DNA of 64,000 bases, from contig NC_083288.1 in NCBI RefSeq assembly GCF_963506605.1, positions 48,112,001 through 48,176,000 of the forward strand, given 5' to 3'. Position 1 is the first letter of the stretch, and every line of letters begins with the position of its first letter. Shown here one piece after another: positions 807 through 64,000 of the stretch. Source of the DNA: Zootoca vivipara. Lineage: Eukaryota. Position numbers and translations under genes: made by a program. Under the pieces are notes generated by a model, which did not search any database, had not been told where the DNA came from, and saw nothing but the letters and a program-made list of their open reading frames with translations.

Positions 807-1033
807 CAGCTCATCTGACAACTTCGTTGACAGCTCACCTCTCCGCTTCGCTTCCCGCTCCGTTTGACAGCTCATCTGACAGCTCACCTCTCCGCTTCGC
901 TTCCCGCTCCGTTTGACAGCTCATCTGACAACTTCGTTGACAGCTCATCTCTCCGCTTCGCTTCCCGCTCCGTTTGACAGCTCATCTGACAGCTCACCTC
1001 TCCGCTTCGCTTCCCGCTCCGTTTGACAGCTCA
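791..1033 (+). repeat. Higher-order tandem repeat (61+49 bp units, twice) between pol and env, rich in TGACAG
   Basis: Units at 796-856, 857-905, 906-966 and 967-1015, partial at 1016-1033. Confidence 0.93.
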
Positions 1034-1073
1034 GCTGGCAGCTTCCCTCTATTGGTGTTCCAACCTTCTCCCC

Positions 1074-3125
1074 ATGCCACCGTCTACTCCACACCCTTTC
1101 TTCCTTTTTCTCCTCTTCAACACCGCCAGCTTTTACACAGCAAGTACGGATACATGGTGCCCAGGACTACACACCAAACACCAATATTTGGACTATGGGA
1201 TTGTGGATATGGTGAGGGAGGGGACCCCAGACCGCTTAGGAGACTTTGACTTCTGCTTACCTGAGACTCGCATCTTGCTACGACATGCCATTCTCCCTAT
1301 TTTGACACCACAAAGCACGTGGGAACTTTTCATCCGTTCCCCAAATTACACGCGTGTTGGGAAATTACTTTTAACCCTCGATGACACCTGGAACAGGGCT
1401 CGCTGTCTTAATGGATCTTACACCCTCTTTGAGGATGGAAGGATCCTTAAACCCTTGAACTGGACTGCACTGGATGGTGACACTTCAGACACAGTTTACA
1501 CTGACCGAAACCATCCCTCTGACCGCCTGCTTTATGGATTCTATTGTCAACGCGTGGACACTTCACCAAAACCCACCATCTTACAAGGAATTTGTTTGCG
1601 ACGCTTCTGCTGTGTCTGGGACATCGGAAAAGCCTCGACCTGGGTGGGAAAAACATATATAGAAGGCTGGTTCCACCCCACTGCTGGCCTCACAGACTCT
1701 AAATGGGACACAACTGGTCCACAAAGGTGTGGAGGTTTGTCCACCAATCTAACCCTTCTCACTCGGCAAGACCCTTTACATCCTGTGGGCACCGCTCCTC
1801 GCCAAAGGGGGGAACTGTTGTCTCCGACTTCTCCCTCTAACAATGATCTCCTCTCCCTCTGGCACTCCAACTCTTATGTACGCCTCATCTCTGAAATAGC
1901 AGGACAAGCAACTACAGACAACTGCTGGGTCTGTGCGCATACCCCAGCCCACCTCCAAAGTGGCATTCCCTTTCTTGGGGTCCCTCTTTCATTGCAACAG
2001 CACCTTTCTGCCAACATATCGTCTTGGAACCTTACCGCAGTAAATCTCACCCACCAATACATTCATTTATCTGGACCTACCAACGGGGACTTATGCCGCA
2101 AATTCAGTGGCGAAGATAGGATGATCGGAGACAGCTCATGTAAGTACACCATTGACATCTCCTTATCAGGCCGAATAACTGTATCGCATAGGGGTGCCTC
2201 TTTTCCCCACCCGGACCTAGCATCCGCTTGGAAACAGATAATGGGGCTACCTGACTCCTGGACCCCCACCCCTATTGCCCGCTGTTTTTTCCGATCGTTT
2301 ATTACAGGGCGTATAAACTCCTGCCTCCAAGGCCTGTTCTGGCTGTGTGGGCATCGTGGTTACGTGTGGGTTAGTCCACATTCTCGCGGTTCCTGCTACC
2401 TTGGCCTAATCTTACCAGGGATTAGAGTGACTCCTGAACTACCCTCGGGTAGGAGACGAAACAGGAGGGAAAAGGACCTCTCTAAATTGTCAAAAGTATC
2501 TGCAAATGGAGAAACATACGGTAGGGCTTTGTTTCCCGCCTACGGAGCAGGCTCCAACCATGTCGATATCCTTAAACTGACTGACATTTTACTAAACTTC
2601 ATGGAGGAGTCCAATGCGGCCACCCAATCTATTCTTACGGAACTCACGGAGGTGAGACAGGTGGCTTTGCAAAATAAATTAGCTTTGGATTTTATATTAG
2701 CATCAACTGGAGGCGTATGCGCTCTTGTAGGATCAGAGTGCTGCACCTACGTCTCTGACCAGACCCTGAATATCACTGGGCATATGAACAATATACACCG
2801 ATTAACGGAGGGACTGAAGGAAATCCAACACGAAGGTCTCTCAGACTCCCACCTCTTCGACTGGTTACCTGGGTCAGCCTGGGTGAAACAACTTTTGGGT
2901 AATGGTCTTATTATACTGATCGCTGTGGTCGCATGCGTCGCTCTATTTTGCTGTGCTATTAATTGTTTCCCCTTGTGTTGTCATGCATGCGGTCCCTGCC
3001 TCCCTACCCCTCACACTCGTCCCCTATTTCATCCAGTCCGGGAACCACAACCTTGGGGCGATCATTCTGAATGCGTAGAAATGGGACCTTTAAGTACTTT
3101 ACAGACTTCAGACTTTTGCATATAA
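1074..3125 (+). CDS. env: Intact gamma-type ERV envelope glycoprotein (~683 aa from ATG 1074)
   Basis: Hydrophobic signal peptide (FFLFLLFNTASF), CWVC motif, furin site RRRNRR, immunosuppressive domain LQNKLALDFILASTGGVC, CX6CC (CALVGSECC), TM helix (LIILIAVVACVALFCC); no internal stops. Confidence 0.95.
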   Translation: MPPSTPHPFFLFLLFNTASFYTASTDTWCPGLHTKHQYLDYGIVDMVREGTPDRLGDFDFCLPETRILLRHAILPILTPQSTWELFIRSPNYTRVGKLLLTLDDTWNRARCLNGSYTLFEDGRILKPLNWTALDGDTSDTVYTDRNHPSDRLLYGFYCQRVDTSPKPTILQGICLRRFCCVWDIGKASTWVGKTYIEGWFHPTAGLTDSKWDTTGPQRCGGLSTNLTLLTRQDPLHPVGTAPRQRGELLSPTSPSNNDLLSLWHSNSYVRLISEIAGQATTDNCWVCAHTPAHLQSGIPFLGVPLSLQQHLSANISSWNLTAVNLTHQYIHLSGPTNGDLCRKFSGEDRMIGDSSCKYTIDISLSGRITVSHRGASFPHPDLASAWKQIMGLPDSWTPTPIARCFFRSFITGRINSCLQGLFWLCGHRGYVWVSPHSRGSCYLGLILPGIRVTPELPSGRRRNRREKDLSKLSKVSANGETYGRALFPAYGAGSNHVDILKLTDILLNFMEESNAATQSILTELTEVRQVALQNKLALDFILASTGGVCALVGSECCTYVSDQTLNITGHMNNIHRLTEGLKEIQHEGLSDSHLFDWLPGSAWVKQLLGNGLIILIAVVACVALFCCAINCFPLCCHACGPCLPTPHTRPLFHPVREPQPWGDHSECVEMGPLSTLQTSDFCI

Positions 3126-32388: not shown

Positions 32389-33852
32389 CTAGGCAACCCA
32401 GTCTTCATCCTCCTCCTCCTCGTCCTCATTATCATCATCTTCCTCATAGTCTTCATCTTCTACTTTTATCATAGCGGCTGCCACCTCCTCATCTACTTCG
32501 TCCTCATCCCCCAAGCATACCTCTACCTCGCATGGTGCTGGCGAGTGTGAATTGAAATACTTCAGCACCTGCTCAGCCTCCATACCAGACTCATGGCACA
32601 GTGCTGACAAGTCATTTTCCTGCAGCTGCAGGTGGCTTGCACGGCACCGTTTCAGTGGGCTTATGTCTGGATGGTGAGCATGCAGTGGGTGAGGAGGTAT
32701 TGAGGAGACAGGCTCTGGATTCTGTCCTGCATTGTCCCGAAACCATTTCAGCTGGCCATGTTTGAGGGCATAGCGAGTGTCTCCAAACCACTGGATGATC
32801 TCTGCTCGTGGTAAACCAGTGATCTTCTCCAGCTGGTGATAATCCTCTCTCCTGGCCCACTGACGACGAAGGAAGAAGGACTTTAACATATCCAGTTGTT
32901 CCTTTGTTTTTCGCCTAGGTTTGCGAAGAATGTCTGAGAGGTAACCTGAAGCCTGCTGCTGGTCCCCCACAGGGCACTGATAGTTCTGAAGGCTGTGTGA
33001 CTCAACATTGGCTGTAGCTGTAGAGGATGATGGGGTAGCTTTGGTGGAAGAGACCGCTGGAAGAATCACTGGGTGATTCCCACCATTCACTGCAGGTGTG
33101 ACAGGTTCAGCCGGCTGCAGGGGTGCTTTGGTAAGACCCCAGGTCATAGGGTGAGAGTTATGGAAATTGCGATCCAAGCTGGTGGTTGTGGTAGGTAGAT
33201 GAGAACTAGAAAGGATTTCTTTGGTATTGTGAAGCTGCACGGAGGTTCCTGAAGGTTCACAGTTCTCCTGAACTTTGTTATGGTGGGACAAGACATTCCC
33301 CTTCAATTCCCAAATGTCCTGAGTGATTCTCCCAAGTTCCCTCATTCCTTGGGCTGTGGTGAAGTGGCTTAAGTGAGTTATGGAAGACTGCTGGTTCGGC
33401 GGATATTTAGTGGAATGGTGCACAGAGGTAGGAACCGGTCGGTGATATTCCTGACTCTTACAAGTTTGGTGCCAGGGGTCATCATCATTCCTGGCAAGCA
33501 GGCAGCTAAAGTGAAGCTGGTCCTGATGGTAGATGAGGCGAGCTCGTGTCTCTTCAATTTCCTCTGCACTCCAACTGATGCCACAGCGTAGGCGCTGTGC
33601 CATGAACCAGGCCTTGACCTTTTCCATGTGGAGGCCATGACGCAGGCAGAGCAAGGCCAGATCAGAGAGGCTGGGGTATGGAAAATAGCTGAAAGTTTGT
33701 AGCAGATGCTGGTTGCCATCAAGGTCGCTTGTCTGTGCTGCCTGTGTCCACACCAACTGGAGGTCCTCAGAGATGGGTGGTAGGCAGATCAAACCGGGAG
33801 GTGAGCCAAGGCAGCCAGGGGCATCCTTGTTGGGAGGCATGACTGCTGTCAT
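32389..33852 (-). CDS. HOMEZ: Homeobox and leucine zipper protein HOMEZ (487 aa, single coding exon)
   Basis: MPPNKD...LICLPPISEDLQLVWTQAAQTS, WFMAQRLRCGISW, RRKTKEQL...WFGDTRYALKHGQLKWFRDN, acidic tail; acceptor at ~33903; synteny. Confidence 0.96.
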   Translation of the reverse strand: MTAVMPPNKDAPGCLGSPPGLICLPPISEDLQLVWTQAAQTSDLDGNQHLLQTFSYFPYPSLSDLALLCLRHGLHMEKVKAWFMAQRLRCGISWSAEEIEETRARLIYHQDQLHFSCLLARNDDDPWHQTCKSQEYHRPVPTSVHHSTKYPPNQQSSITHLSHFTTAQGMRELGRITQDIWELKGNVLSHHNKVQENCEPSGTSVQLHNTKEILSSSHLPTTTTSLDRNFHNSHPMTWGLTKAPLQPAEPVTPAVNGGNHPVILPAVSSTKATPSSSTATANVESHSLQNYQCPVGDQQQASGYLSDILRKPRRKTKEQLDMLKSFFLRRQWARREDYHQLEKITGLPRAEIIQWFGDTRYALKHGQLKWFRDNAGQNPEPVSSIPPHPLHAHHPDISPLKRCRASHLQLQENDLSALCHESGMEAEQVLKYFNSHSPAPCEVEVCLGDEDEVDEEVAAAMIKVEDEDYEEDDDNEDEEEEDEDWVA

Positions 33853-43547: not shown

Positions 43548-44351
43548 ACTACTGGGCCAAAGCAAACAAGATGAATTTTAACAAGGAGAAATGTAAAGTA
43601 CTACACTTGGGCAAAAAAAATGAAAGGCACAAATACAGGATAGGAGACACCTGGCTTGAGAGCAGTACATGTGAAAAGGATCTAGGAGTCCTGGTAGACC
43701 ACAAACTTGACATGAGTCAGCAGTGTGATGCAGCAGCTAAAAAAGCCAATGCAATTCTGGGCTGCATCAATAGGAGTATAGCGTCTAGATCAAGGGAAGT
43801 AATAGTACCACTGTATTCTGCTCTGGTCAGACCTCACCTGGAGTACTGTGTCCAGTTCTGGGCACCACAGTTCAAGAAGGATACTGACAAGCTGGAACGT
43901 GTCCAGAGGAGGGCAACCAAAATGGTCAAAGGCCTGGAAACAATGCCTTATGAGGAACGGCTTAGGGAGCTGGGTATGTTTAGCCTGGAGAAGAGAAGGT
44001 TAAGGGGTGATTTGATAGCCATGTTCAAATACTGTATATAAAAGGATGTCATATAGAGGAGGGTGAAAGGTTGTTTTCTGCTGCTCCAGAGAAAAGGACA
44101 CGGAGCAATGGATTCAAACTACAAGAAAGAAGATTCCACCTAAACATTAGGAAGAACTTCCTGACAGTAAGAGCTGTTCGGCAGTGGAATTTGCTGCCAA
44201 GAAGTGTGGTGGAGTCTCCTTCTTTGGAGGTCTTTAAGCAGAGGCTTGACAGCCATATGTCAAGAATGCTTTGAAGGTGTTTCCTGCTTGGCAGGGGGTT
44301 GGACTGGATGGCCCTTGTGGTCTCTTCCAACTCTATGATTCTATGATTCTA
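43548..44351 (+). mobile_element. Young CR1 LINE 3' end
   Basis: 156-aa near-intact ORF2 C-terminus ([12 protein letters not shown]...[15 protein letters not shown]) and a (ATTCTATG)n tail. Confidence 0.93.
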
Positions 44352-44636
44352 AGCAGAGGGAGAAGGTGGGGCAGAAGGCGCTGTTGCTTGGGAGGACCAT
44401 CGTAGACCAGTGCAGGGGAAGGGATGAGTCCAGAGAGGTCCATAGAACCAAAAAGGTTAATGAACAGCAAGAAAAAGCAAATGCTTCATTCATGTTTGCT
44501 CAGTGAATGAAGAGTAGGAAGGAGGCAGGATCAGGAGGAAAAGGAAGCCTGGATGTGACTGGGGCAGGCAGCCCAAGCAGAGGCTAGGGCAAGCGAGTGG
44601 GTGGTTTTTGAGGGGGCAAGAGACCCCCCAGAGATC

Positions 44637-44857
44637 TCAGTCCCGGCAACTGGAACATTGTGCGTGGGCTCCCCCATAGCCCAGGCAGTCTGGCCCCAGA
44701 CACTGGCAGCAGGCATTGTGGAACCAGCGGTAGCGCCAGGCGCCCACCGACTGGCAAGCCGTCCGGCACCGGCTCATAGACAGGCAATCGTTGAAGAAAA
44801 TGGACTGGCACGGTGGCGCGGTGGCATTGAAGCCCTTGGCATCTGAGAGGGTCAAGC
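44637..44857 (-). CDS. Twisted gastrulation-like paralog, coding exon 4 (C-terminal cysteine-rich domain)
   Basis: TTCCAG acceptor; encodes [73 protein letters not shown], versus TWSG1 [46 protein letters not shown]. Confidence 0.95.
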
Positions 44858-45559
44858 CTGGAAGCGAGAGGAGAGAAGGTTTGCGGCCGTTGCGGTTGAA
44901 CCCAGGACAAAGGCCCGCAGCTCAGATGTCGTGCGTCTGCTTTGCACGAAGAAGGTCCCAGGCTCGATCCCCAGGTAGGGCTAGGAAAGAATCCAGACTG
45001 AGACCCTGGAGAGCTGCTGCCAGCCTGTGTAGGCAGTATGGAGCTAGCCTGGCCGATGGGAAGGCTGAGAGGCAACGGCTGGGAATGACGAGCTCATGTG
45101 TGAATTGAACCAGGGTGAATTGAACAAATAGAATAAGCTGGCCTATCCCGAGTTGGATCAAAAGTCCATCTAACTCTGTATTGTCTGCACTGACTGGCAG
45201 CAGTGCTCCAGGATTTCAGACAAGGCATTCCCAATGCTACTAGAAGACGAACCTGCGACCTTCTACATGCAAAGAAGATGTTCTGTCCCTGGGCAATGGC
45301 CCTTCTAGGTCACAGCACACATCACTCAAGTAACCCCCACGCCAATCCAAAATAACCCCCAGGTGTCATTGTGAACAGGTATGTGTCATTTATTACTGTA
45401 GATCATGCCCTGCTCTCCAAGGTTCTAGTCTGAAGCCCTAACCATTATACCATGCTGCCTCTTAACCCACCTCCCCCATGCAAATGGCATGTATCCTTCC
45501 TGCGCCATCTGCTTCTCCCAACAGCCCCCTCGCCCCCTCCCTGCCCGCCACATGCGTAC

Positions 45560-45775
45560 CTGTGTGAGGCCCCAGCAGGAGGTGGCCGGTCTCCGCGTGG
45601 TTCTGCCGCAGCTCCTCTTCGACTGGGAGGGTCAGGATGCTCCAGCCCATGGGAGGGTCGTTGTCGGAGATGGCCATGAGTGCCCGGAAGAGCGAGGGCA
45701 CCGGGGACATTAGGTTGTGCATGGAGCTCCGCAGGGCAGGGCGGGGGGCCGAGGAGGGGCGTTTGTCACACAGCC
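45560..45775 (-). CDS. Twisted gastrulation-like paralog, coding exon 3
   Basis: 216 nt, phase 1-1, AAG/GTACGC; encodes GLCDKRPSSAPRPALRSSMHNLMSPVPSLFRALMAISDNDPPMGWSILTLPVEEEL..., versus TWSG1 PIPSLFRAL...NWNIVSFPVAEEL. Confidence 0.93.
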
Positions 45776-46124
45776 CTTGCGGAGAGGAGAAATCAAGTCA
45801 GAATTCCTCAAGGACCACAGTTCAGCCACTGGGAAGAAGGGGGCAGGGTCCTGGATCTGGAAATCAGCCCTATTTTCCTCGAAGGCCCCATAGTTCCCCC
45901 CGCCCCCGGTTTTCCCCCAGGAAAAAAAAAAGTGTGTGGAATATTCAAACTATAACAAACTTTTTTTTCAATTTCCGGGGGGGAAATGGCTTTGGGGGAA
46001 AAAAAACCGTTTCCCCCCCTTTTTCCAGGGTTTTTTCCGCCTCTACTTTGGCCCCCACCTTTTCTTCCACCCTGCAATGTGACAGTTGAATACGGGTGTT
46101 TAGCACCCCCTGGAATTCACTCAC

Positions 46125-46224
46125 CCACACATTCACAGCACGACTCCCAGAGATTGCCCAAGCAGAAAGCACATTCCCGACAGCATGGGCACCCAGCTCG
46201 GTTGGCCTCACACTGGCACACTTC
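46125..46224 (-). CDS. Twisted gastrulation-like paralog, coding exon 2
   Basis: 100 nt, CAG/GTGAGT; encodes [33 protein letters not shown], versus TWSG1 [33 protein letters not shown]. Confidence 0.95.
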
Positions 46225-46364
46225 CTGCCAAGAGATACGAAGTAGGGGTGTTAACAGTGACCCCCCCCCCCGGTTCCCTTTGTAAAACGATCACACCAGC
46301 GCGCACACAAATCTGCCCCCGTTTTGCCCCCAAAGTGAGGAAGGCCAATTCGACAAATACAGCC

Positions 46365-46610
46365 CTATTACCGAGAAGGCCCTCTGCGTAGTTCCCTGTA
46401 ACCCCTATAACTTCTCGCAGGGAGGGAACCACCAGAAGGCCCTCGGAGCTGGATCTCAGGGTCCAGGCTGGACGATGGGGTAGAGACACTCCTTCAGGTA
46501 TACTGGGCCAAGGCCATTTAGGGCTTTAAAGGTCAGCACCAACACTTGGAATTGTGCCCAGAAACGTACTGGGAGCCAATGAAGGTCTTTCAGGACCAGT
46601 GTTATAAACT
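46365..46610 (-). mobile_element. L2 LINE fragment in a TWSG-like intron
   Basis: LKDLHWLPVRFWAQFQVLVLTFKALNGLGP; same family as 52098-52455. Confidence 0.8.
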
Positions 46611-47241
46611 GACTTCAAATTAAATAGTTATATTTTTCATATATTGACTTCCCACCCACACCACATTGTTTTTCTTCATACCCATTTCTACTACATTATA
46701 TATCAATATTTTATCTATTACAGAAATCCCTCTAATGCAATCACTTTATCCTTTCTTCTCAAATCCTGCCCACAATTTCATTTTATAGGGCTTTTTCAGA
46801 TAGTCCAAAAAAGGCCCCCATTCTTCCAAAATGTGCACGTGTTGAGAAATAATTAAATACTTAGCAGATCCTGTGAACTCAGGTTGACCCTCCCAGAGGA
46901 GGAGGTTGCCCACTGCCTCTCTGCCTGATGCCCTGGCCTGACTCTGTCCAGTCAGCCCCCTGCCATGAATGCGCTGTTCTCCCCTGATTGCTGCATCAGC
47001 TGTGACTGGGTAGTTCAGCCTCCCCAAATGAAGAGGTTGCCTTGCTGTGCTTCTGCGTGAGTGACTGTTCTGGGCTGCCAATCCAAAGGAAGCTCGTGGT
47101 AGCGGCTCATGCAGATACACAAAGGGTCGTTCGCCACCAAGAAGGAGTACTTGTCACGCATTCTAACCACATTTTGTGTGAGAGCACTGGTTAGTGCTGT
47201 GACTGAGCCTCCCATTCAAGGGGGAGAAGAGGTCTCAGGAG

Positions 47242-48060
47242 CAGTGCTGGATTTACGTAGAAACTAAACAAGCTAAACAAGGGATCCAGGTGGCGCTGTG
47301 GGTTAAACCACAGAGTCTAGGGCTTGCTGATCAGAAGGTCGGCGGTTCGAATCCCTGCAACGGGGTGAGCTCCCGTTGCTCGGTCCCAGCTCCTGCCCAC
47401 CTAGGAGTTTGAAAGCACATCAAAGTGCAAGTAGATAACTAGGGACCGCTCCGGCGGGAAGCTAAACGGCGTTTCCGTGCGCTGCTCTGGTTCGCCAGAA
47501 GCAGCTTTGTCATGCTGGCCACATGACCCGGAAGCTGTCTGCGGACAAACGCCGGCTCCCTCGGCCTATAGAGCGAGATGAGCGCCGCAACCCCAGAGTC
47601 GGACACGACTGGACCTGATGGTCAGGGGCCCCTTTACTTTTACCTTTAAACAAGCTATAGTTTAGGGCCCCCCAAAAAAAATTAAAGGAAAAAAACCTGG
47701 ATGTGCATTTCCAAAATATAAGGCAAAAAAACAAATAAAATAAAAGCCACATACAGCAACAGTGTTTTGTGTTGTGTAGGCTCCTATGATGTACGTAATG
47801 GGCCCCACCTGCTAGCCTGTTCCCTAAAATATCACTGATTTGCTCATTTCGATATATAGAGTGCCTACATTCTGCATGGACTGGTTGCAGGGCAACATGG
47901 GCAAATGGCTTGAGATACCTATAAGGTCCATAAATGAACATATAGCATATATTCAACCCGAAAAACAGTGACAATTTGTTGTTGACAAAGGGCAGCTGGA
48001 CATATAAAGGGCGCCATTACCTTCAGTAGCTTAGGACCTCATCAAACCTAAATCTGGCTT
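47242..48060. mobile_element. DNA-transposon-like remnant carrying a nested Sauria-type SINE (47281-47646, TSD TAAACAAGCTA)
   Basis: The SINE consensus and TSD are clear; the outer element is inferred from imperfect termini CTGGATTTA...TAAATCTGG. Confidence 0.6.
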
Positions 48061-48139
48061 GGGAAACGCCCACCCCAAAACCAAGTCTGCAGGTTTGCAC
48101 CAAGATCTGATGCAAGGCAGCACCTTCTCAACCTTTTAC

Positions 48140-48253
48140 CTGCAGCAAGCACTTGCTGACGTCGCTGGCGCAGAGCGCCTTATTGCACCCATCCGCACGG
48201 GAGACCACAGCCCATGTGGCTGCCACCAAAAGGAAGGCCACACCGTGGGACAT
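48140..48253 (-). CDS. Twisted gastrulation-like paralog, coding exon 1 (signal peptide and start of N-terminal domain)
   Basis: MSHGVAFLLVAATWAVVSRADGCNKALCASDVSKCLLQ; CNKALCASDVSKCL is identical to TWSG1; exon acceptor at 48291/48292, donor GTAAAA. Confidence 0.95.
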
Positions 48254-48869
48254 TGCTACAATGTGGGGCGGTGGGGGGCGAGGAGACAGACCTGGAAGAA
48301 AGTGGAAGGTAAATGGTTACCTATGGGGAGAGGAACATCGATCAGGTGACAAAAGAATTGAGTAGCCCACAAAAATGTTTATTCGCCAGCTGCCCCACTG
48401 TACAGATACCTTTTGGGTCCTAAACAGATGTGGGGGGCTGTACCCCTATCAACACAGATTCCATAACACTTCCCTGGTGCCTCTTTAAGCATTACGGATT
48501 TAGTTCCTACAACTACAAAGTGGTTAAATTCACATTTCCCCCTTTCCTCTCTTATACTTTCCATCTAGATCTACTCTAACCGACCAAGGGATCTGTTGAT
48601 CTCTTCAGCCCCCCAGCTTTTCAATAGAGATACCTATGCTGTGGGGCAGGTCTCTTCTCTCCACTATAGGGACATGGGGGGGGGGGAGAGAGAAGCAGCT
48701 AATCTGGGGTAAACTAGTTACTAGTACATTATAAAAGCATCTTGGGGATTACATATCATGGGCTAAAGGAGCTAACACTCCCCCCGCCCTCAAGTAAATC
48801 CTAAATAAAACTGAGTACTGTAGTAACAGGAGGGATTACAAAGATGCAGTTCCCCCCCCCCCCAGTCAA

Positions 48870-49191
48870 GGTATGGACGTAGCCCGCGGCCAAAGACTCT
48901 CTCTCGACCTCCTCGGCATATATCCAGGCCTTTTCTTTTGACGGCGTGGGGGACATAGTGATGGCTAACAGTTGGGGAAAGTGCTCGCCCCCTCCCGCAT
49001 GCAACCAAGACGACGCGAAGAAGAAGAAAACTTAGTTAAGTGTCGATCGGCTTACCCGGAGAGGGGGGTGAAGTATGCGATCGGTGTATAGGGCTTTTTT
49101 TTTTTTAGGGTGTCCGGACCACAGTCGCCCCCCTCTCTCAGTCTCTGCCTGGTAGGAAAAGGAGGAGGGATCTGGAAGAAGGGAGGGCTAT
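48870..49191 (-). promoter_or_regulatory. CpG-rich non-coding first exon/promoter region of the TWSG-like gene (donor at 49056)
   Basis: CpG enrichment; minus-strand CCGG|GTAAGC donor upstream of the 48291 acceptor. Confidence 0.6.
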
Positions 49192-49430
49192 NNNNNNNNN
49201 NNNNNNNNNNNNNNNNNNNNNNNNNNNNNNNNNNNNNNNNNNNNNNNNNNNNNNNNNNNNNNNNNNNNNNNNNNNNNNNNNNNNNNNNNNNNNNNNNNNN
49301 NNNNNNNNNNNNNNNNNNNNNNNNNNNNNNNNNNNNNNNNNNNNNNNNNNNNNNNNNNNNNNNNNNNNNNNNNNNNNNNNNNNNNNNNNNNNNNNNNNNN
49401 NNNNNNNNNNNNNNNNNNNNNNNNNNNNNN
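49192..49430. other. Assembly gap (239 N)
   Basis: Run of N. Confidence 1.
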
Positions 49431-51018
49431 CAACCAGCCACTGATTTGGGCTTGCACCCAACTCTTCCAACTCTCTCCCCCCTCCAGAGGACCAAAGAGC
49501 AATCCTTTTGTTCCTTTTTCAAGGCTGCAGAAGAAATGAAAGAATGAAAGCAGCATGGATGGCACCAGGCGGTGGTTTGTTAAGGTTTCTGGGAACTGTA
49601 GCTCTGTGAGCGGTGAACTACAGTTCCCAGGATTGCTAGGGAGGAATTCGTGTGCTTTAAATGCATGGTGTGTTCTCAGCCTTTGTTCTCCATCCGATCC
49701 TTGCTAGGTACCGTGTTTCCCCCTTTTTAAGACACCGTCTTATAACTTTTTTTCCTCAAAAAAACACACAGTGTCTTATTTTCAGGGGATGTCTTTTTTT
49801 TAAAAAAAATTATTACTGTTTTTATTACAGTACTTGTAAAATACAGTATTACAACTTGTGGCGGGCTGGACCGTGTGTGTGCGCACACACACACACACAT
49901 ACACATACGCCCATGCCTTCCCTCCCTCCCCGCGTTCAGATGGAGCAGGCTGGGCTGGGGAGGGGGCACCCCGTCGACACTGGGTCTCAGCTTGCGCTGA
50001 GGGGCCGCAGCCACCCTGTCAGGAAGGGCCCCTATCCCGGGGTGTCCATGACCGTGCTGCTAATGTGCCACCGCCAAGCAGCACAGAGGAGTCCTCCTCC
50101 TCCTTCTCTTACTGCTCCTTCTCCCTCCTCGCAGGCTCTCTGCTCCGCGGCGCTGCTGGGCTCTCGAAGCGTTCTGCACTGCAGCAGCCGCCGGTTCTGG
50201 GCTGCGGAGAGAGCAGGCAGGGCGAGCACACGCAACCTGCGGGAATTGATGCGCTCCCGTCTGCGGCGCGTGCAAATGGCCCGGTAGGTCGGGTCTCCAC
50301 ACAAGGCGCCTTCGCCGCCGTAGCTGCAGGCTTCCCGCCGGGGCCGCCTGCAAAGCGCCGCGCCGAGGCTCCCCGGGAGAAGGCGTGCAGGGGCTGAAGC
50401 CAGAGGCAGCGGGGGGCATATTCCGGCCCCGGTGATGTCAGGCCTCCCCATGGGACCGGGACCGGGAACGGGACTGGGGGGGGGAATCTCGCTCAGCTTC
50501 GTCACTCTCCCGGACAGCAGCAGCAGCGAGAGGAGTGCACGCTCGTCCCTGGCGTCACAGCCTCAAGCGCAGGCTGGGGAAGAGGAGGCGAAGGAGGCGC
50601 GCTCAGTGCGGTGGGGGCTGAGGCATGGTGGAGTGCTCCGAGCCTCTGGGAGCCGGCAGGAGGAGGAGGAGGCTTGCCGGGTCGTCACCCAGCAGCGCGC
50701 GCAGAGCACCCCGAGCCTCCGGCAGCCAGCAGCAACAACAACAATCCCAGAGGCTCGGGGCGCTCCACGCACGCTGCTGGGTGACGACCCGGCAAGCCTC
50801 CTCCTCCTCCTGCCGGCTCCCAGAGGCTCGGGGCACTCCACCATGCCTCAACCCCCACTGAGCGCGCCTCCTTCGCCTCCTCTTCCCCAGCCTGCGCTCG
50901 AGGCCACGGTGCATGCAGCCGCCTGCTGCCCAGCCTTTTTGTTCTCCTAACCCCTCCGTCTTGCCTACCTCGAGCCTCACATTGTTCGCCTCTTCGCCCG
51001 CAACTCCATCCCGAGACG

Positions 51019-51108
<90 letters not shown>

Positions 51109-51411
51109 AGGAGAGGGTGAGGGTGGGGAGACAACCAGCCACTGATTTGGGCTTGCACCCAACTCTTCCAACTCTCTCCCCCCTCCAGAGGACCAAAGAG
51201 CAATCCTTTTGTTCCTTTTTCAAGGCTGCAGAAGAAATGAAAGAATGAAAGCAGCATGGATGGCACCAGGCGGTGGTTTGTTAAGGTTTCTGGGAACTGT
51301 AGCTCTGTGAGCGGTGAACTACAGTTCCCAGGATTGCTAGGGAGGAATTCGTGTGCTTTAAATGCATGGTGTGTTCTCAGCCTTTGTTCTCCATCCGATC
51401 CTTGCTAGGTA
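49431..51411. repeat. 280-bp direct duplication (49431-49710 and 51132-51411) enclosing a Tc2-like transposon end, GC-rich DNA and a hairpin
   Basis: The copies read identical; TA|CCGTGTTTCCCC...TAAGACAC begins at 49711. Confidence 0.85.
50560..50904. repeat. GC-rich inverted repeat, ~160-bp arms and 30-nt loop
   Basis: 50560-50719 pairs with 50750-50904 with few mismatches and one small indel. Confidence 0.93.
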
Positions 51412-55778: not shown

Positions 55779-56258
55779 CTAGAGGAAGTGTATCCACCCT
55801 GTCTCACAGCAATCGGCAGTGGGGCTGGGGGGCTCATCCTCCTCATCCACACAGGGTGGAGGCCTCAGGCAATAGTTGCGGCCTTGGTTGTTGTCCCAGA
55901 ACTCTTCTGCCCCCACAAGGTAGCAAATTGCAAACTCTAGGACAACCCCGGGGACCAGCGGCGTGAGCAGCGGAAGGCGGAAGGCAAAGCGGTCGGCGTG
56001 GTCCCGATCCCGGCCTGCAGGAGCGGCGTAGGATGCCCGAACTTCGTGTTGCGTAGCCCAAGAATCCCAGGTGTATCGCAGGGAGACCCGTTTTTCATAG
56101 GCCAAGTTGAGGACCCGGATGGTGCCGGATACACAGGAGCCTTCGGCCCGGGCCCCTTCGAGGAGAACGCACTGCGCCAGGAGGCGCGGTAAGAAATCTG
56201 GCATGGACAGGGGGTCTGGGAAGGTGGGCTCCAGCAGGTATCGCAGACTCAAAGGATC
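55779..56258 (-). CDS. PPP1R3E: PPP1R3E coding exon 2 (CBM21 glycogen-binding domain)
   Basis: GTIRVLNLAYEKRVSLRY, ADRFAFRLP, EFWDNNQGRNY, GWIHFL*; CAG acceptor, phase 0. Confidence 0.95.
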   Translation of the reverse strand, partial: DPLSLRYLLEPTFPDPLSMPDFLPRLLAQCVLLEGARAEGSCVSGTIRVLNLAYEKRVSLRYTWDSWATQHEVRASYAAPAGRDRDHADRFAFRLPLLTPLVPGVVLEFAICYLVGAEEFWDNNQGRNYCLRPPPCVDEEDEPPSPTADCCETGWIHFL

Positions 56259-56989
56259 CTGGAGAGACAAAGGAAGAGGGGAGTGAGAATTGTGGAAGGG
56301 CCATGGCTCAGAGGCAGGTCACAGGTTGCTGGAGACAAAGTTGATATGTTTGATTAGAGAAAAACCATTGATGAAATTTATTATTGTTAACAACAACAAC
56401 AACCCCTTTTGGAGTTTTTGTGTAAAAAAGAAAATGAATCAAAGACATTTGGGTTGGAAGATTGGGAAAATGTTACCTAACAGATAGAAGATCAGTTGGA
56501 TGTCATTCTAGAGTGAATATATTTTGACTAATTTCTTTTATGAAACTGACAGACAGAAAATCAAAAGTCCTTTAAATTTATTCTCTTCTCTTTTTTTTCT
56601 ATTCCCCCCCCCCTTTTCCTTGGGTGTTTTCATTTCTTTTTCTCACCTTGTTTTTAAGGGATTTTTAAATGTTTGATGTTTTATCATGTTTTTAATATAG
56701 TGGTACCTCAGGTTAGGAACTTAATTCGTTCTGGAGGTCCGTTCTTAACCTGAAACTGAGGTACCACTTTAGCTAATGGGGCCTCCCGCTGCCGCCGCGC
56801 TGCCAGAGCACAATTTCTGTTCTCATCCTGAAGCAAAGTTCTTAACCCGAGTTACTATTTCTAGGTTAGCGGAGTCTGTAACCTGAAGCATCTGTAACCT
56901 GAAGCATCTGTACCACTGTATTCTCTTGGGAGCCGCCCAAAGTGGCTAGGGAAACCCAGCCAGATGGGCGGGGTATAAATAATAAATTA

Positions 56990-57035
<46 letters not shown>

Positions 57036-57793
57036 TTCTGGCATTTCCCTGTTTGTCTGGGAAAGATTTGAAACCTTGGTGACCCACTGCCAGTCAGTGT
57101 AGACAAGACATAAGATAAGATGGACTAATTGGTCTAACTCTGTATAAGGCACCCTCCCTGTGTTCCTAATTAGAAAATGGAGCATGTGAAGGACTATTTG
57201 TGTGTTAGGGGGAAAACAGAGGGGGAAATGGTGAGTGGGAACAAACCATGAGAATTTAGAAAGAAAAGACCAAATAAGATGGAAAGAGAAAACATTATAC
57301 AGGATATACGGTATGACTACATAAATTTAAACAAGTGAAAAGAAAACAGAAGGAATTCTAGAGAACGCAGGCAGAGAGAGACTAAAAGCTGGCAGGAAAC
57401 AGTGTGTGCCCATGTGGTAAAGTGGTTTGAATGTGAGACTTGGACCTGGAACCTGCGAGACTCGGGTTCAAGTCCTCACTAGGCCAGGAAGCTCCCAGGG
57501 TAGGCCTGGGTCAGCCTTTGTTTCTCAGATTAACCTTCTTCACCCGGCTGTCATGGGGATAAAATGGGATATAATAAGCACATGACCAAGTAAATAAAGA
57601 GGAAAGGAATTCTCGAATCAGGTCAGGAGGACCAAGAAGAAGGAAAGTCAATGGATGGGAGGTGAGGAAAAGGGGCAATAAAGATGAAAGATAAAGATAC
57701 TGGCTGGCCAGCAGAAAAAGAACAGGAGGAAAACAAGAGAGAGAGGTGGAGGAAGAGGGTGAGAAAGAGAAAGAGAAAGAGAAAGAGGAGCGA

Positions 57794-58031
57794 GGCCACA
57801 TTTGCACCATACATTTAAGACACTCTGATACCTCTTTAAACAGTCATGGCTTCCCCCAAAGAATCCTGGGAACTGTAGTTTGTTAAGGGTGTAGAGAGTT
57901 GTTTGGCAGCCCCTATTCCCCTCATGGAGTTGCAATTCCCTAAAAACGGTAGCTCCCAGAATTCTCTGAGGGAAGCCACGACTGTTTCAAGTGGTACCAT
58001 AACGCTTTAAATGTATAGTGTGGATGCGGCC
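57794..58031. mobile_element. Palindromic MITE-like element
   Basis: Arms CACCATACATTTAA...TTAAATGTATAGTGTG; related pieces at ~5710-5830, ~49570-49670 and ~58035-58180. Confidence 0.55.
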
Positions 58032-58347
58032 CTTTAAAGCACGTTCTTTCCCCTCAAAGGATTCTGGGAACTGTAGTCGACCCCTCACAAGAGATACAAT
58101 TCCCAGCGACCCTTAACAAACTCCAGTGCCCAGAATTCTTTGAGGGGAAAGGAATGTGCTTTGAATGTGCCTTAAATGTACAGGTCACACAGGGAAAAGG
58201 AAAGAAGTCAAGGGGGGAGATGAAGGGGTGGGACAAGGCGAAGAAGAGAAGAGACTGGAGATCCAAGATGGCAGCGTGTGGAGAAGGGAAGGGCGGGTGG
58301 ATGAGGAGGCAGGCAAGGTGGAAAGCAAGGGAGGCGCTGATGGATCC

Positions 58348-59444
58348 TGTTATAGAAAATTATATGGGGGGGGGGGAGCAGGACACCATTATTAATGAAC
58401 AGAGAGGGGTGACAGCTGCAATACCCAGAATCCTGTTCAACGCCATCTTCCCAGTCTCCGCTCTGCTTCAAAGACCTTCACCCCTCCTGCTTGGACGCAA
58501 CCCTGCCTTGAGGAAGGCTTAAGGATCTGCATATGCACAACAGTTAGCATAAGCTCACACATTTCCCTTCTCCACCTTCCCCTCTGCCCCGACTCCTTTA
58601 GATTATCACTACAGAACCTTTTGCCTTAAATTATGCTAGATTCTCTCTGTATTAGAATTGCTGTCTTATTCATGACGTATGCTAGGATCTCTCTGTATTA
58701 TAATTGCTGTTTTATGTCCCAGAACCTTTATATACCAGGAGTCCAGGACTACTACCTTTTGCATAGAATTCTCTGTATTAGATATGTCTCCTGTAAAAGG
58801 AAATGCTGCATAACCCGTGCATGACCCCAGCCCACCTGAACCTTGCCCCATCGCCATCCTGATTCAAAAGACACACATGGACAAAGATGGATTAACTGGG
58901 ACAGTTTATTCAAACCTCCAGAAGTGTCACCTTTTACATAATCCCAGGGATCATCCTTGCGTGACCTGGGGGAAAACACCTGCCGGATGGACCCCAACCC
59001 CTCAGCAATCGCCAGGAACGGCCCCACCTCAACTCCCATCTAGACTGATCAAACAAAGGGAAACCCATCAGCAATGGAGGAGAACAATTGACATTTCACC
59101 ATATGAAGAAATAGTCGTATCAACACCCAGTTAATCCCATCAGCACCCATTTTCCTTGTCTTTCCCGTCCCTCCCAGTCCAGGGATTTCCATGTGGGGAC
59201 AGAAAGGTATAAAAGGGAGATTCACCATTTCCCGGGGTTCCTTCCTACATTCTTTGAGGCAGGGACCCTACCGCTGTAGTTCTTTCTTTTCTGTAATAAA
59301 AGGGATCAGTTTGTTTTTCCTGACAGCATCGTGTGGTCTCTGTCATTTCCCGGCGGAGCTGAACTTAGGGCAAATTTTGGACCTTCCGACCCGCGTCTGT
59401 CCTTCCTAAAAGGCTGCGCATTTTAGGGGCAATTTTCCATAACA
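58348..59444 (+). mobile_element. Solo ERV LTR (1097 bp), TSD ATCC, antisense in the PPP1R3E intron
   Basis: TGTTATAGAAAATT...AATTTTCCATAACA inverted termini, 4-bp TSD, TATAAAA ~59208, AATAAA ~59295, U3 direct repeats ~58632-58790. Confidence 0.9.
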
Positions 59445-61466
59445 ATCCTAAGTGCCATTTGAGAGTCACTTTCAGGAAAGAGAAGGGAGACTTCTGGTCT
59501 CCGGACAACATTTAAAAAACCCCTTTCCCAGCACCACCAGCCCATCTATGTTAATTCCTTTGGCTGGAATGGAGTCGTTATGGAGACATCTCTAATGCAG
59601 CCAGCAAAACTCTCACCAGCCCAAGCAAGCACAGCCACTTTTGGACCACAACTCCCATCAACAGCAGCCAGCCACAGAGTTATGGTCCTGGACGGCAGCT
59701 GGTTGGCGAAGGCAAGGCTGCCTTTATATAAAGGCCCTACGAGCAGACTAGTGAGGGCTGGGGGCCCAAAATAAAAGCATTTTTCATGTTGGCATGACTG
59801 TGTGGGCTCAGAATGGGAGGAACGGCCTTTCTTTAAGCCTGAGGACTCTCTTTGGAGACGGAGGGATCCCCTCAGCCTGCCAAGGGTGAGGAGATCTTAT
59901 ATCCCCTCCCAGCTCCTTGCACAACCACCATCCCTGGAGATTTGGGGCCATCTCAAGAGATGCTCAATAATTCTCAGGGGGGAAAGCTTAAGGCGAACTG
60001 CGAAAGACCTTAACTGCCCAAAGGTGGGCAGAATCTTGAATGCCTCCGAAGCCTTGTAGGTTAGCTCCACCTGGAAACTGTGGAAACAACCTTTCAAGGC
60101 ATATTTTGGATTCATGCCTTTTGTATAATAATAGATCTAAGGCCTCTTCAGGGGTTACAAAGAGGGAAATGCAAATGCATTGGGGGGCAATGCAGATTAG
60201 TATCCATGCCCCATCGCTGTTTCTGCCTCCTAACTCTTGGAAGGCAACTGACTGAAAGAAGGAGACACCCGTATCTGCGGAGGCCTCTTGACACCTTTTA
60301 ATAACCTCCTGTTATGCCAAATTTGAAAATGCATGAGAAATCTCTGTGGATACTAAAGGCTCTGTGCTTCTGTGCCTTGCTTTGTAAAGTAGGAAGGCAG
60401 GCAGGGAGTGGAAATGATGGCGGAGAGGCTTGCATTTTCACAACACACCTCCCCCAGCAACCATAGAATCATAGAATTAGAAGGGACCCTACGGGTCATC
60501 TAGTCCAACCCCCTGCAACGCAGAAATCAATGCAGGAGTGCACTTTAACACTGAAAGAAATATACTGGCCAGTTACCTTTCCTTCCCTATTTACAGGACT
60601 CCTGCAAAGGCTCAGAGACGTGGATATAGGTTACTACAGGGTAATAACGTGACTTTATGGTAAGAAACGAAGGCTGCAATCCCATGTACGCTTATCTCGG
60701 GACAAGGGTCACAGCTCAAGGGCATAGCATCTACTTTGCATGCAAGATGTCCCAAGTTCAATCCCAAGTGGCAACTCCTCAGGTAAGGATGGGAATGCCC
60801 TCTGCTTGAAACCCGGAGAGCCCGGAGAGTCACTGTACTGCCTTCCTTAGTTGTTACAACTCCCATCAGCTCCAGGCAACAGGTTCAAAACTTGCGGCAA
60901 GTAAATACAGAACACTATTTATTAGACCTAGCTGCCTGTTTTGATGTCTCATAGCCTCTGGATGGCACCAGCTTCCCCCCATGGCCAAAAGAGGCATTGC
61001 ACATGGGAATATGGAAAGCTGCTTTCTACTGAGTCAGACCTCTGGTCCACCTCACTTGGTATTGTCTGCACTGACCGGCAGCAGCAGCAGCAGCAGCAGC
61101 AGGGGACACTCCCAGCCCTATCTGGGAGATGCCAGGGTTTGAACCTGGGACCTTGTGCATGCAACACAGATGTTCTACCCCTGGGCTACAGTCCTTATCT
61201 GAAAATGCTACAGTTGATGCTAGTTGATGCAATATAATGCATTTTGGACCAGTCCAATGCTGGTTATTTGGCTCTTTAAGGCGCTTGTGGGGGGTAATGA
61301 GTAGGAATTATTATTCTCCACGGAATTACTGTAATGCTTCCTTTGCCCTCAGAAAGGGGCTGCTGAAGGGAAATCTATGGTTGATTTCCTTCCCTCCCAC
61401 CTTTCTGCCACTTCCCATTCTGCCCCAGGATTCATCCCACCACTAGGCTGGCTAACCTCCCGTTAC

Positions 61467-61919
61467 CTTCACAGGTGGGCAAAAAGGCAGGCACGGGGCA
61501 AAGTGGCTGAGTGAGTCGCGCCTCAGCTGGGCATGGACACGCTCCGGCACCTCTGGAAGGTCGTTGGGCCAGAACTGGCGGACGCTGGTGAGCTCCAGGC
61601 CCAGGGAGTCGGCAAAGCGAACCCTCTTGCGTGTCCCGGGGCTGCGGCTGCGTGAGGCCCCCCGACTTCTGCCCCGGGCAGGGGCCGAGCGAGTCCGGCG
61701 CCTTCCTTTTCGCTTGTGCCCTCCAAAGACGTGCCGTCGCCTCCGGGGCCTGCTCCGGGGCCTGCTCTCCGATTCGGATTCGGAGCCCTCGGTCCCCGAG
61801 TCCTCTGCTATGCTCGGCCGGGCGGTGCGGTAGTAGGCTCGTTCATACAGGCCTGCGATGTAGCTCAGGTTCCGTGGGATGTTGCTAGGGGTCAGAGGGG
61901 ACGGTGGGGCACGAGCCAT
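61467..61919 (-). CDS. PPP1R3E: PPP1R3E coding exon 1 (PP1-binding RVxF)
   Basis: IPRNLSYIAGLYERAYYR, RSRSPGTRKRVRFADSLGLEL; GTAACG donor; total 310 aa with exon 2. Confidence 0.95.
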
Positions 61920-64000
61920 GGGGGCAAAGCTGCAGACCCCAAGGCTTGGCTCTTCTACGCAGCTCAGGCCCAAGAATGACTTTTGGGGAGTGTGTGGTGG
62001 CAATCCAGTTCTTCACGCCCTTCGCCGGACCTTCCTCCACTGTTGCTCCGTTTGGGACGGACTGCCTTATTGCACGTTTGGGAGGGAAGATGTTCCTTTG
62101 CGGCTCTGTTGTCCACCGCCCTGCCTCTCAGTCTTCTTCAGCGCTCTGATTCTCCCTCAGCATCTTACCTCCTCTGATTTCTCCCGCTAGAGTCTCTTTG
62201 CCATGCTTCCGGTTGTCTGCAGACTCTCGGTCTGTCTGTGGGTCACTTCTTCACTTATTACCACTCCATCATCTTCTGCTCTCTCTCCCTCAGTCCATCT
62301 GGGCTGGTGTTTTCGCTCTACCTTTCCATTTTTCAGTGTATTCCACTGCTCTTCCTTCTGAAGACTTTCTCTCCCTCGTTCTACCTCATTCTTTTTGCTT
62401 TGTCACTGTGCCTTTTGGAGATGCTCTGTGTTTTATTATTCCATCCGTGCTCTGTATCTTTCTGTTGATTCAACTGTGTGACTTTGCCTTCTTCCCAAGG
62501 ACACCGCCACTCTCGTCTGCCTTTGAGGAGTCAAGTCGGTCAAGTCATCGATCTGCTCTCTCCTGTATCTTTTCACTGTACTTCATCTCTGATGCTCTCT
62601 TGTGTATATTTAAAATGTTATATGTGTCTGTATCAAGATATATTTCCCTCGCTGCTTCTTCCTTCTTCTATCTGTCCATCGCTTCACTTCCACGCTCTCC
62701 CACTCCAGAGATTCCCAGACTTTCTCTCTCTCTGGAAGATGCTGTTAAATATTTTTGCTTCCTGGAGAGTTTTCAGTCTCTCTAGCTTTTTGTTCAGTGT
62801 GGTCCAGCTAAAGGTGACTCACAATCCTCAGAGATGCAGCTCCTTGACAACCTGACTGCCCATCCAGAATCTGAAGGGCCGGCACTCCAGAGGAGATCTC
62901 TCCAAGGAACGCAGACAGGCACAACTCAGCCAAGAATGGGAGGCTTGGGCTGGTGGGAAGGAGAAGATCTTTGCTTCCAGACCCAAAAAGGTTTTATTAC
63001 TGCTAGGAAAAGGGCTCCCTCTCCCTCACACCTTGCCCCTCTAGGTTCCAGAGACAAGATGTACCTTTAAAAAAAGTATACGTGCCCAGAAATGTTTCTT
63101 TGGGAGATGAATTATTCAGAAGAGAAAATGGAACTAATGGATTATGCAAGAGCCATCAAGCCCCACAAAGATCAGGAAAAGGGGGGTGGGATTCAAAATC
63201 GGGGGCAGATTTGGCAGTGGGAGCTCAGAAATGGGAAATGTGTGTGGGTTTTTTTTTTGGGGGGGCTTCAAGCTGGCAACAAGGGAAGTCAGTAGAGCTG
63301 GGGAGCTTGTTTTGAGGGGCAGAGATGAAGCTGTTAACTGAGGTGGAGCTGCTCCTTTGGCTTCATGCCGCGTTAACCAGGTGCCTGAGAGCGTCTCTGT
63401 ACATGAAACTGCAGGCATCCGGTCATGAATAATGGAGCAAGCCTAAAGCTTTCTGCCCTCCTCTCCTTAACATCCCTCCTGCCTGCTTTCACCACGAAGC
63501 ACAAAAGGAGTTATAGGATGTTTACTGTACTATCTTTATTGCAAAGGAAGGAGCCTCTTCTCTCTCCCTTCCCTAAATTGATAGAATCACACTTTTCCTT
63601 TCCACTGACAGCCACCTTAGATCAGCTTCAGAAAACAGGCAACCGCATCACGCCACCTCCCTGAATCTCATGAAGGTACAGAAATGGTTACGGACAGCTC
63701 TACAAATACGTAGCCTTTTCACTCTTGGGAGCAGAGTGAGTTCAATGACATCCTCCTCATCTTATTTTTATCGCAGCTGTTCTGTCCCTCTGCTCAACTT
63801 GCCTCATTTCCCAAGGTCATGTGAAATTGAGCTTGGTTTGTCTCGGGCCCGAACGTTAATGCATCCCTTGCAGACACATGCAAACAGCCAATGTTTGTTT
63901 TGCACCTAAAACAATCTGTCTGTCTCTTACGCCTATGAAGTCCGGCTTTTTACACTCTGCACAATTTCTCTGGGACAGCCTTTCCAGGCATCTCCAAACT

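Follow-up and report, generated by a model that had tools for sequence, protein, structure and literature searches.

A minus-strand locus in the Zootoca vivipara genome very probably carries a gene that is intact, transcribed and spliced correctly, and that encodes a secreted Twisted gastrulation (Tsg) protein of the Tsg2 type – an ancient vertebrate sister paralogue of TWSG1. The locus lies between HOMEZ and PPP1R3E in a 64,000-nucleotide stretch of NCBI RefSeq assembly GCF_963506605.1 (contig NC_083288.1, positions 48,112,001 to 48,176,000; hereafter ‘the window’, with coordinates counted from its first letter). A first-pass annotation of this DNA, made from its letters alone, had proposed a hidden second Tsg gene here, ancient in origin, retained by squamates and lost in mammals. 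Our analyses uphold the paralogy and change the account of its novelty.

The gene has four coding exons of 114, 100, 216 and 221 nt, which are exons 2–5 when a 5′ non-coding exon is counted first. Reading of the sequence reproduced the exon sizes, frames and splice sites of the first-pass annotation: the coding exons share a single frame via two split codons (residues 72 and 144), and the introns are all GT...AG on the minus strand (CT..AC on the plus strand). The spliced product is a 216-amino-acid protein of secreted type, with a hydrophobic signal sequence ahead of the first cysteine. Its exon translations contain CNKALCASDVSKCLLQ, PSLFRAL and YRWFHNACC, plus a cysteine-dense block. Consistent with the predicted signal peptide, motifs and 14+10 cysteine pattern, we found 14 cysteines in the N-terminal part and 10 in the C-terminal part, which together align to the 24 cysteine columns of TWSG1.

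We searched each exon separately, using the curated Pfam cut-off. All four peptides are 100% identical to a Zootoca vivipara RefSeq protein, XP_060137830.1 (‘twisted gastrulation protein homolog 1-like’), aligning to its residues 1–38, 39–71, 73–143 and 145–216. Because it matches every exon, XP_060137830.1 (P0277) could stand in for the spliced product in the whole-protein tree, alignment and fold analyses. Coding exons 1 and 2 matched Tsg_N (PF23782; E-values 4.6e-6 and 3.2e-9) and coding exons 3 and 4 matched Tsg (PF04668; 8.7e-6 and 1.5e-25), each above the Pfam cut-off, and the 216-residue RefSeq protein matched both domains (Tsg, 1e-37; Tsg_N, 1.6e-22). Coding exon 4 also matched the human TWSG1 chain 8bwa (2.1e-19). 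An AlphaFold2 model of XP_060137830.1 had a predicted local distance difference test score of 76, exceeding 90 in the C-terminal domain, and its only structural matches were to TWSG1: 8bwa (1.3e-18), 8bwi (3.6e-18) and the N-terminal domain in 8bwl, a GDF5 complex (7.7e-4). By N-terminal domain, C-terminal domain and fold, the encoded protein belongs to the Tsg family.

We next placed the protein among vertebrate Tsg proteins. It is 41% identical to Zootoca TWSG1, 57% to a coelacanth ‘like’ protein, 58% to one from axolotl, 54.5% to one from basking shark and 49% to the Xenopus tropicalis ‘Twisted gastrulation homolog 2’. Two maximum-likelihood trees were built under the LG+C20 model with invertebrate outgroups, the second with deuterostome outgroups only. 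The squamate second-gene proteins form a clade with 100/100 support, nested with proteins from Cetorhinus, Acipenser, Latimeria, Protopterus, salamanders and at least nine frogs, including both Xenopus species. Support for this larger Tsg2 clade was 100/100 in the first tree and 93/58 in the second, or 96/95 when the shark was removed. Gnathostome TWSG1 forms a clade of its own in the second tree (99/97) that contains shark, sturgeon, bichir, teleosts, frogs, squamates, turtle, crocodile, birds and mammals.

Canonical TWSG1 and Tsg2 coexist on separate chromosome-sized contigs in Zootoca, Podarcis, Lacerta, Pogona, Gekko, Rhineura and many snakes. In Zootoca vivipara the 59.6 Mb contig carries TWSG1 (P0269/P0270) and the 54.9 Mb contig Tsg2; the corresponding contigs measure 63.5 and 59.6 Mb in Podarcis muralis, 56.7 and 51.7 Mb in Lacerta agilis, 197 and 122 Mb in Pogona vitticeps, and 91.9 and 74.3 Mb in Rhineura floridana. 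The frog Hyperolius likewise has both genes. The separate TWSG1 that the first-pass annotation expected in the same genome is therefore present. A profile search with the Tsg2 group gave a similar division, with Tsg2-type proteins scoring 281–369 bits, a lamprey protein 268 bits and every TWSG1 at most 262 bits; among the annotated proteins searched, the Tsg2 score tier included none from mammals, birds, turtles, crocodilians, bichir or teleosts. Judged from protein sequence, tree placement together with coexistence with TWSG1 assigns the locus to the Tsg2 orthology group.

Transcript data under the same organism label comprised two transcriptome-sized contig sets from different studies (X2 and X3) and two raw-read RNA runs (X19 and X20). 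A 1015-nt X2 contig joins 44324-44856, 45559-45774, 46124-46223 and 48139-48296 with the introns removed. Contigs from X3 contain exon 3 together with parts of both adjoining exons. In a further X3 contig, 48139-48289 runs directly into 49054-49148, which verifies the predicted non-coding exon upstream. All four junctions proposed from the sequence – 49056/48291, 48140/46224, 46125/45775 and 45560/44857 – are present in these assembled transcript contigs.

The 5′ non-coding exon spans 49056..49148 on the minus strand as a minimum extent. A 2-nt ambiguity (gt/gt) affects the placing of its junction; read canonically as GT-AG, it lies at 49056/48291. The first-pass annotation had extended this exon to 49191, upstream of which a run of Ns begins, and had described it as CpG-rich; the existence of the exon is confirmed by the X3 contig, and the CpG richness is weak, with few CpGs only. 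The window and the X3 contig differ by one base in the length of an A run at 49095 within this exon. Exon 2 (48140..48291, minus strand) comprises 5′ untranslated region (UTR; 48291-48254) and 114 nt of coding sequence (48253-48140), is covered by X2 and X3 contigs (48139-48296), and codes for the signal peptide plus the opening portion of Tsg_N, including CNKALCASDVSKCLLQ and the helix alpha1 that corresponds to the contact with bone morphogenetic protein (BMP). Exon 3 (46125..46224, minus strand; 100 nt) encodes the remainder of Tsg_N, with 10 cysteines and a conserved tryptophan (Xenopus W67), and both of its junctions (46224/48140 and 45775/46125) occur in the X2 contig. Exon 4 (45560..45775, minus strand; 216 nt), present in X2 and X3 contigs, encodes the last N-terminal cysteine, the linker and the start of the Tsg C-terminal domain, where the PSLFRAL helix alpha4 carries the Chordin-contact leucines. 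Exon 5 (44324..44857, minus strand) opens with 221 nt of coding sequence (44857-44637) that ends in the stop codon TGA (44639-44637), and continues with at least 313 nt of 3′ UTR; it encodes an N-glycosylation sequon, NAT, and the 10-cysteine C-terminal domain. We considered the contig end at 44324 as a polyA site and rejected it, because a dispersed repeat begins at the same place; a search for AATAAA upstream of this contig end found none.

Several observations weigh against the reading of the locus as an intact, expressed Tsg2 gene. The squamate stem branch is long in both trees (1.13–1.16 changes per column), and four replacements – L58F, T161Q, S206G and K207A – are fixed in squamates at sites that are near-invariant in other vertebrate Tsg proteins. 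Coverage in X19 and X20 is near zero, and expression is therefore low or tissue-restricted. X19 reached a depth of 1–2 on exon 5 and the 3′ UTR and X20 gave no coverage of the gene, though with ~6% of each run read these values are neither proof of junctions nor proof of silence. First mates in X19 fall on the plus strand, which fits minus-strand RNA in a usual stranded library. That the runs behind the spliced X2 and X3 contigs are RNA is only guessed. Four further runs (X15–X18) cover most of the genomic stretch (0.86–0.89 of its words); their type is unrecorded and is presumably DNA.

These points bear first on whether the gene is a decaying relic, still transcribed and released from selection. 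Such a relic would be consistent with the very low coverage in the two raw-read runs, with the faster evolution of Tsg2 than of TWSG1, and with the loss of one of the 24 cysteines (Cys53) in snake copies. Patterns of conservation argue otherwise. The frame is open, and the complete set of 24 cysteines persists in lizards whose lineages split roughly 200 million years ago. Zootoca Tsg2 is 97% identical to that of Podarcis, 86–87% to those of gecko and anole and 76–78% to those of snakes – values only slightly under those of TWSG1 for the same species pairs (98% for Zootoca–Podarcis, 83% for Zootoca–snake). The splice sites are all canonical and used. Within the species, the window and the transcript contigs show five differences, of which four are synonymous and the fifth is a conservative alanine-to-valine change that keeps an N-x-T sequon. 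We therefore regard a functionless relic as improbable; the conservation of squamate Tsg2 fits purifying selection, which from these sequence comparisons would be only somewhat weaker than that on TWSG1.

The same stem branch bears on a second alternative, in which long-branch attraction has drawn a squamate-specific, fast-diverging duplicate of TWSG1 toward the ‘like’ genes of amphibians and fishes. The drop in Tsg2 clade support to 93/58 with deuterostome outgroups only would also be expected under this explanation. The trees were, however, made with a site-heterogeneous model, and forcing all squamate Tsg genes together was rejected by an approximately unbiased (AU) test (log-likelihood difference 68.9, p-AU 4e-10). 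We also identified characters that squamate, coelacanth, shark and amphibian Tsg2 have in common and TWSG1 lacks: L73, R87, S89, H136, L139, the stretch ISDNDPPMGW, and a short linker that bears an N-x-T/S sequon immediately ahead of the C-terminal domain. Taken with the AU test, these characters make a squamate-specific duplicate highly improbable. The remaining alternative – that the locus is a translocated orthologue, the lizard's sole TWSG1 in a new location, as the NCBI name ‘homolog 1-like’ and one Anolis carolinensis record named plainly ‘homolog 1’ might suggest – is already refuted and carries almost no weight, as the same species has a canonical TWSG1 on a different contig, the window protein is 41% identical to it versus 54.5–58% to coelacanth, salamander and shark Tsg2, and it falls outside the 99/97 TWSG1 clade.

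The preferred assignment to Tsg2 places the duplication early. Since cartilaginous fish, ray-finned fish, amphibians and squamates occur in both clades, the duplication is older than the gnathostome radiation, in agreement with the ancient paralogue that the first-pass annotation had suggested. Intron positions appear to be common to the two genes: in mis-predicted TWSG1 models, the true sequence takes over precisely at Q|ELCQC and VG|MC, which are exon borders in the window. These apparently shared positions argue against retroposition. An origin of the Tsg2/TWSG1 pair in the two rounds of whole-genome duplication (2R) is plausible and fits the known fourfold paralogon 14q11/16q/18/20q, which is represented by families such as SALL1-4 and NFATC1-4.

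The lamprey and hagfish genes grouped with TWSG1 or were unresolved in the trees. Lamprey and hagfish Tsg proteins and gnathostome TWSG1 have in common a deletion of 2–3 residues relative to Tsg2 and invertebrate Tsg. We had considered the corresponding three-residue stretch after FRAL(T) as a derived marker of Tsg2 and rejected it, as the outgroups carry the long form; the deletion is thus derived in TWSG1 and the cyclostome genes. The common deletion hints, at the level of protein sequence, that the cyclostome genes found here may be of the TWSG1 type.

To gain insight into the likely activity of the window protein, we compared its residues with those that mediate binding by TWSG1. Crystal structures and mutagenesis of human TWSG1 show that its N-terminal domain binds BMP/GDF dimers, with helix alpha1 in the type-I-receptor site and Ile40 as a hydrophobic finger; further BMP contacts are made by Lys28, Ala32, Ser33, Asp34, Val35 and Glu42, and Trp67 is required for BMP binding in Xenopus (PMC11167000). 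The TWSG1 C-terminal domain binds the von Willebrand C domains of Chordin-family proteins via a hydrophobic patch formed by Ile100, Leu103, Leu107, Leu114, Trp116, Phe172, Met176 and Met188, of which Leu103 and Leu107 were examined by surface plasmon resonance (bioRxiv 10.1101/2024.07.08.602551). In our alignment the window protein is identical to TWSG1 at the BMP-contact positions K28, A32, S33, D34, V35, E42 and W67. Position 40 is a leucine, as in every invertebrate outgroup and all Tsg2; this leucine was considered as a Tsg2 novelty and rejected, being the ancestral state. Within the Chordin patch L103, L107, W116 and F172 are identical, and the swaps I100V, L114M, M176L and M188V are conservative.

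Because the BMP- and Chordin-contact residues are kept or conservatively changed, the window protein is most likely, by homology, a secreted BMP/Chordin modulator that acts like TWSG1. After cleavage of the signal peptide, helix alpha1 of the 14-cysteine domain would insert its leucine finger (human Ile40) into the type-I-receptor pocket of a BMP/GDF ligand. The 10-cysteine C-terminal domain would bind Chordin-family von Willebrand C domains via the patch around the two leucines of PSLFRAL. In this way Tsg2 may act as an extracellular BMP modulator beside the canonical TWSG1 of the same genome.

The long stem branch and the four fixed replacements imply that partner specificity may differ from that of TWSG1. 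L58F falls within the domain that binds BMP; the other three (T161Q, S206G and K207A) fall within the one that binds Chordin. One elaboration is that squamate Tsg2 underwent a burst of change on its stem after the gene was lost in other amniotes, and thereby gained an altered partner or ligand specificity. The contrast between ~1.15 changes per site on the stem and 0.02–0.3 inside squamates speaks for such a burst, though we consider this scenario as a whole rather unlikely. If it is true, squamates possess a lineage-specific extracellular BMP regulator. The cysteine matching human TWSG1 Cys53 is absent from all three aligned snake Tsg2 proteins (P0298, P0286 and P0296), which have a two-residue deletion at this place (ANRT--RCC); mature snake Tsg2 has 23 cysteines, an odd number, compared with 24 in lizards. 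Loss of Cys53 in snakes may have added a further change in specificity.

The gene is not hidden, as the first-pass annotation had supposed. Its exact 216-amino-acid model is in RefSeq, and NCBI has annotated the gene in more than 40 squamates – lacertids, iguanians, geckos, skinks, anguimorphs, one amphisbaenian and many snakes – under names such as ‘homolog 1-like’, ‘1-A-like’ and ‘1-B-like’. When coding exon 4 was compared with 1.8 billion representative proteins, three full-length proteins matched at 85–86% identity, followed by a gap to 60% or less. Nor is the paralogue class new, being the Tsg2 known from Xenopus. The gene is thus already public, and its confirmation here is of low novelty; two points go beyond existing annotation, namely that the ‘TWSG1-like’ genes of squamates are explicitly placed in Tsg2, and the phyletic pattern of Tsg2, which is present in squamates, amphibians, lungfish, coelacanth, sturgeon and shark and was not seen among the annotated proteins of other amniotes or teleosts. 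Public names of Tsg2-type proteins do not follow orthology: the plain name ‘twisted gastrulation protein homolog 1’ is given to the Tsg2-type proteins Anolis carolinensis XP_008121138.1 (P0276) and Bombina bombina P0175.

The closest named relatives are in frogs. UniRef names the Xenopus tropicalis protein (P0167) ‘Twisted gastrulation homolog 2’, and its Xenopus laevis counterpart is LOC446926 (P0185). This gene was reportedly described by Oelgeschlaeger and colleagues in the Int J Dev Biol in 2004, in a paper said to be entitled ‘Identification of a second Xenopus Twisted gastrulation gene’; our literature search on a second vertebrate Tsg gene did not return that paper or anything else relevant, its ‘Tsg2’ matches being to the Drosophila tsg2 allele or gene. 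Xenopus Tsg2 falls within the same clade in both trees and the same profile-score tier as squamate Tsg2, and the two have in common CLLQE, VGLC, an RSS motif, HxLLG, a short sequon-bearing linker before the C-terminal domain and 24 cysteines. They differ in that identity is only 49%, a long stem branch leads to the squamate copies, and the frog C-terminal tail QPKEMMPEGKKERATV is absent from squamates; the likeness is one of protein sequence. Expression of Xenopus Tsg2 is reported to be late and to occur in lateral plate mesoderm, neural crest and branchial arches.

TWSG1 itself (human 18p11; structures 8bwa, 8bwi and 8bwl) resembles the window protein in its two-domain architecture, its 24 cysteine columns and its BMP- and Chordin-contact residues, which the window protein keeps or changes conservatively. 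It differs in the linker – HLLLGPH in the window protein, LVSFLE... in TWSG1 – and in belonging to another clade and another chromosome. Its evolution is also far slower, and its branches are short in both trees. Drosophila provides a parallel for the retention of more than one Tsg-family BMP modulator: Tsg, Crossveinless/Tsg2 and Shrew each have a role of their own (PMC13186252). Unlike the vertebrate pair, these paralogues arose by independent insect duplications.

Vertebrate Tsg work has been framed around a single TWSG1, and a 2024 structure paper treats only TWSG1 and its Xenopus a/b copies (PMC11167000). The retention and expression of a second ancient Tsg gene in squamates – which is also annotated in frogs, salamanders, lungfish, coelacanth, sturgeon and one shark – means that Tsg loss-of-function or expression studies in lizards, snakes and amphibians must consider two genes. 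The names ‘TWSG1-like’, ‘1-A-like’, ‘1-B-like’ and the Anolis ‘homolog 1’ mask this orthology and could mislead comparative work.

The neighbors of Tsg2, established in this window only, are the two genes that the first-pass annotation had named, and all three lie on the minus strand. Downstream, the main coding exon of HOMEZ occupies 32389..33852 (minus strand; Pfam Homez 2.4e-13, Homeodomain 2.5e-8). Upstream, PPP1R3E spans 55779..62003 (minus strand), comprising a CBM21 exon at 55779-56270 (CBM_21, 1.7e-27) and an N-terminal open reading frame (ORF) at 61452-62003; for the latter, which had no Pfam match, position and composition are the sole basis of the assignment.

Several other features surround the gene. 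Dispersed repeats at 44300-44463 (just beyond the 3′ UTR), 46430-46600 and 47250-47740 (the last two in the first coding intron) draw thousands-fold read depth in all runs. Upstream of the 5′ exon, the run of Ns covers 49192-49430. A 280-nt stretch directly after it (49431-49710) recurs at 51132-51411, exactly 1701 nt on, and a GC-rich island (50000-51000; GC 0.68–0.69) lies between the two copies. The recurrence could be a true local duplication or an assembly duplication at the gap, and the true Tsg2 promoter and first exon may be located in the 49192-51411 region.

Elsewhere in the window, we observed part of a gammaretrovirus-like endogenous provirus at 15-3125 (plus strand). It includes an ORF at 15-806 (plus strand) with an integrase C-terminal domain of the murine leukemia virus type (9.9e-17) and an open, 700-amino-acid envelope ORF at 1023-3125 (plus strand; TLV_coat, 3.5e-12). 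An ORF at 43571-44041 (plus strand), for which a Pfam search gave zero matches, resembles the tail of a long interspersed nuclear element (LINE) reverse transcriptase.

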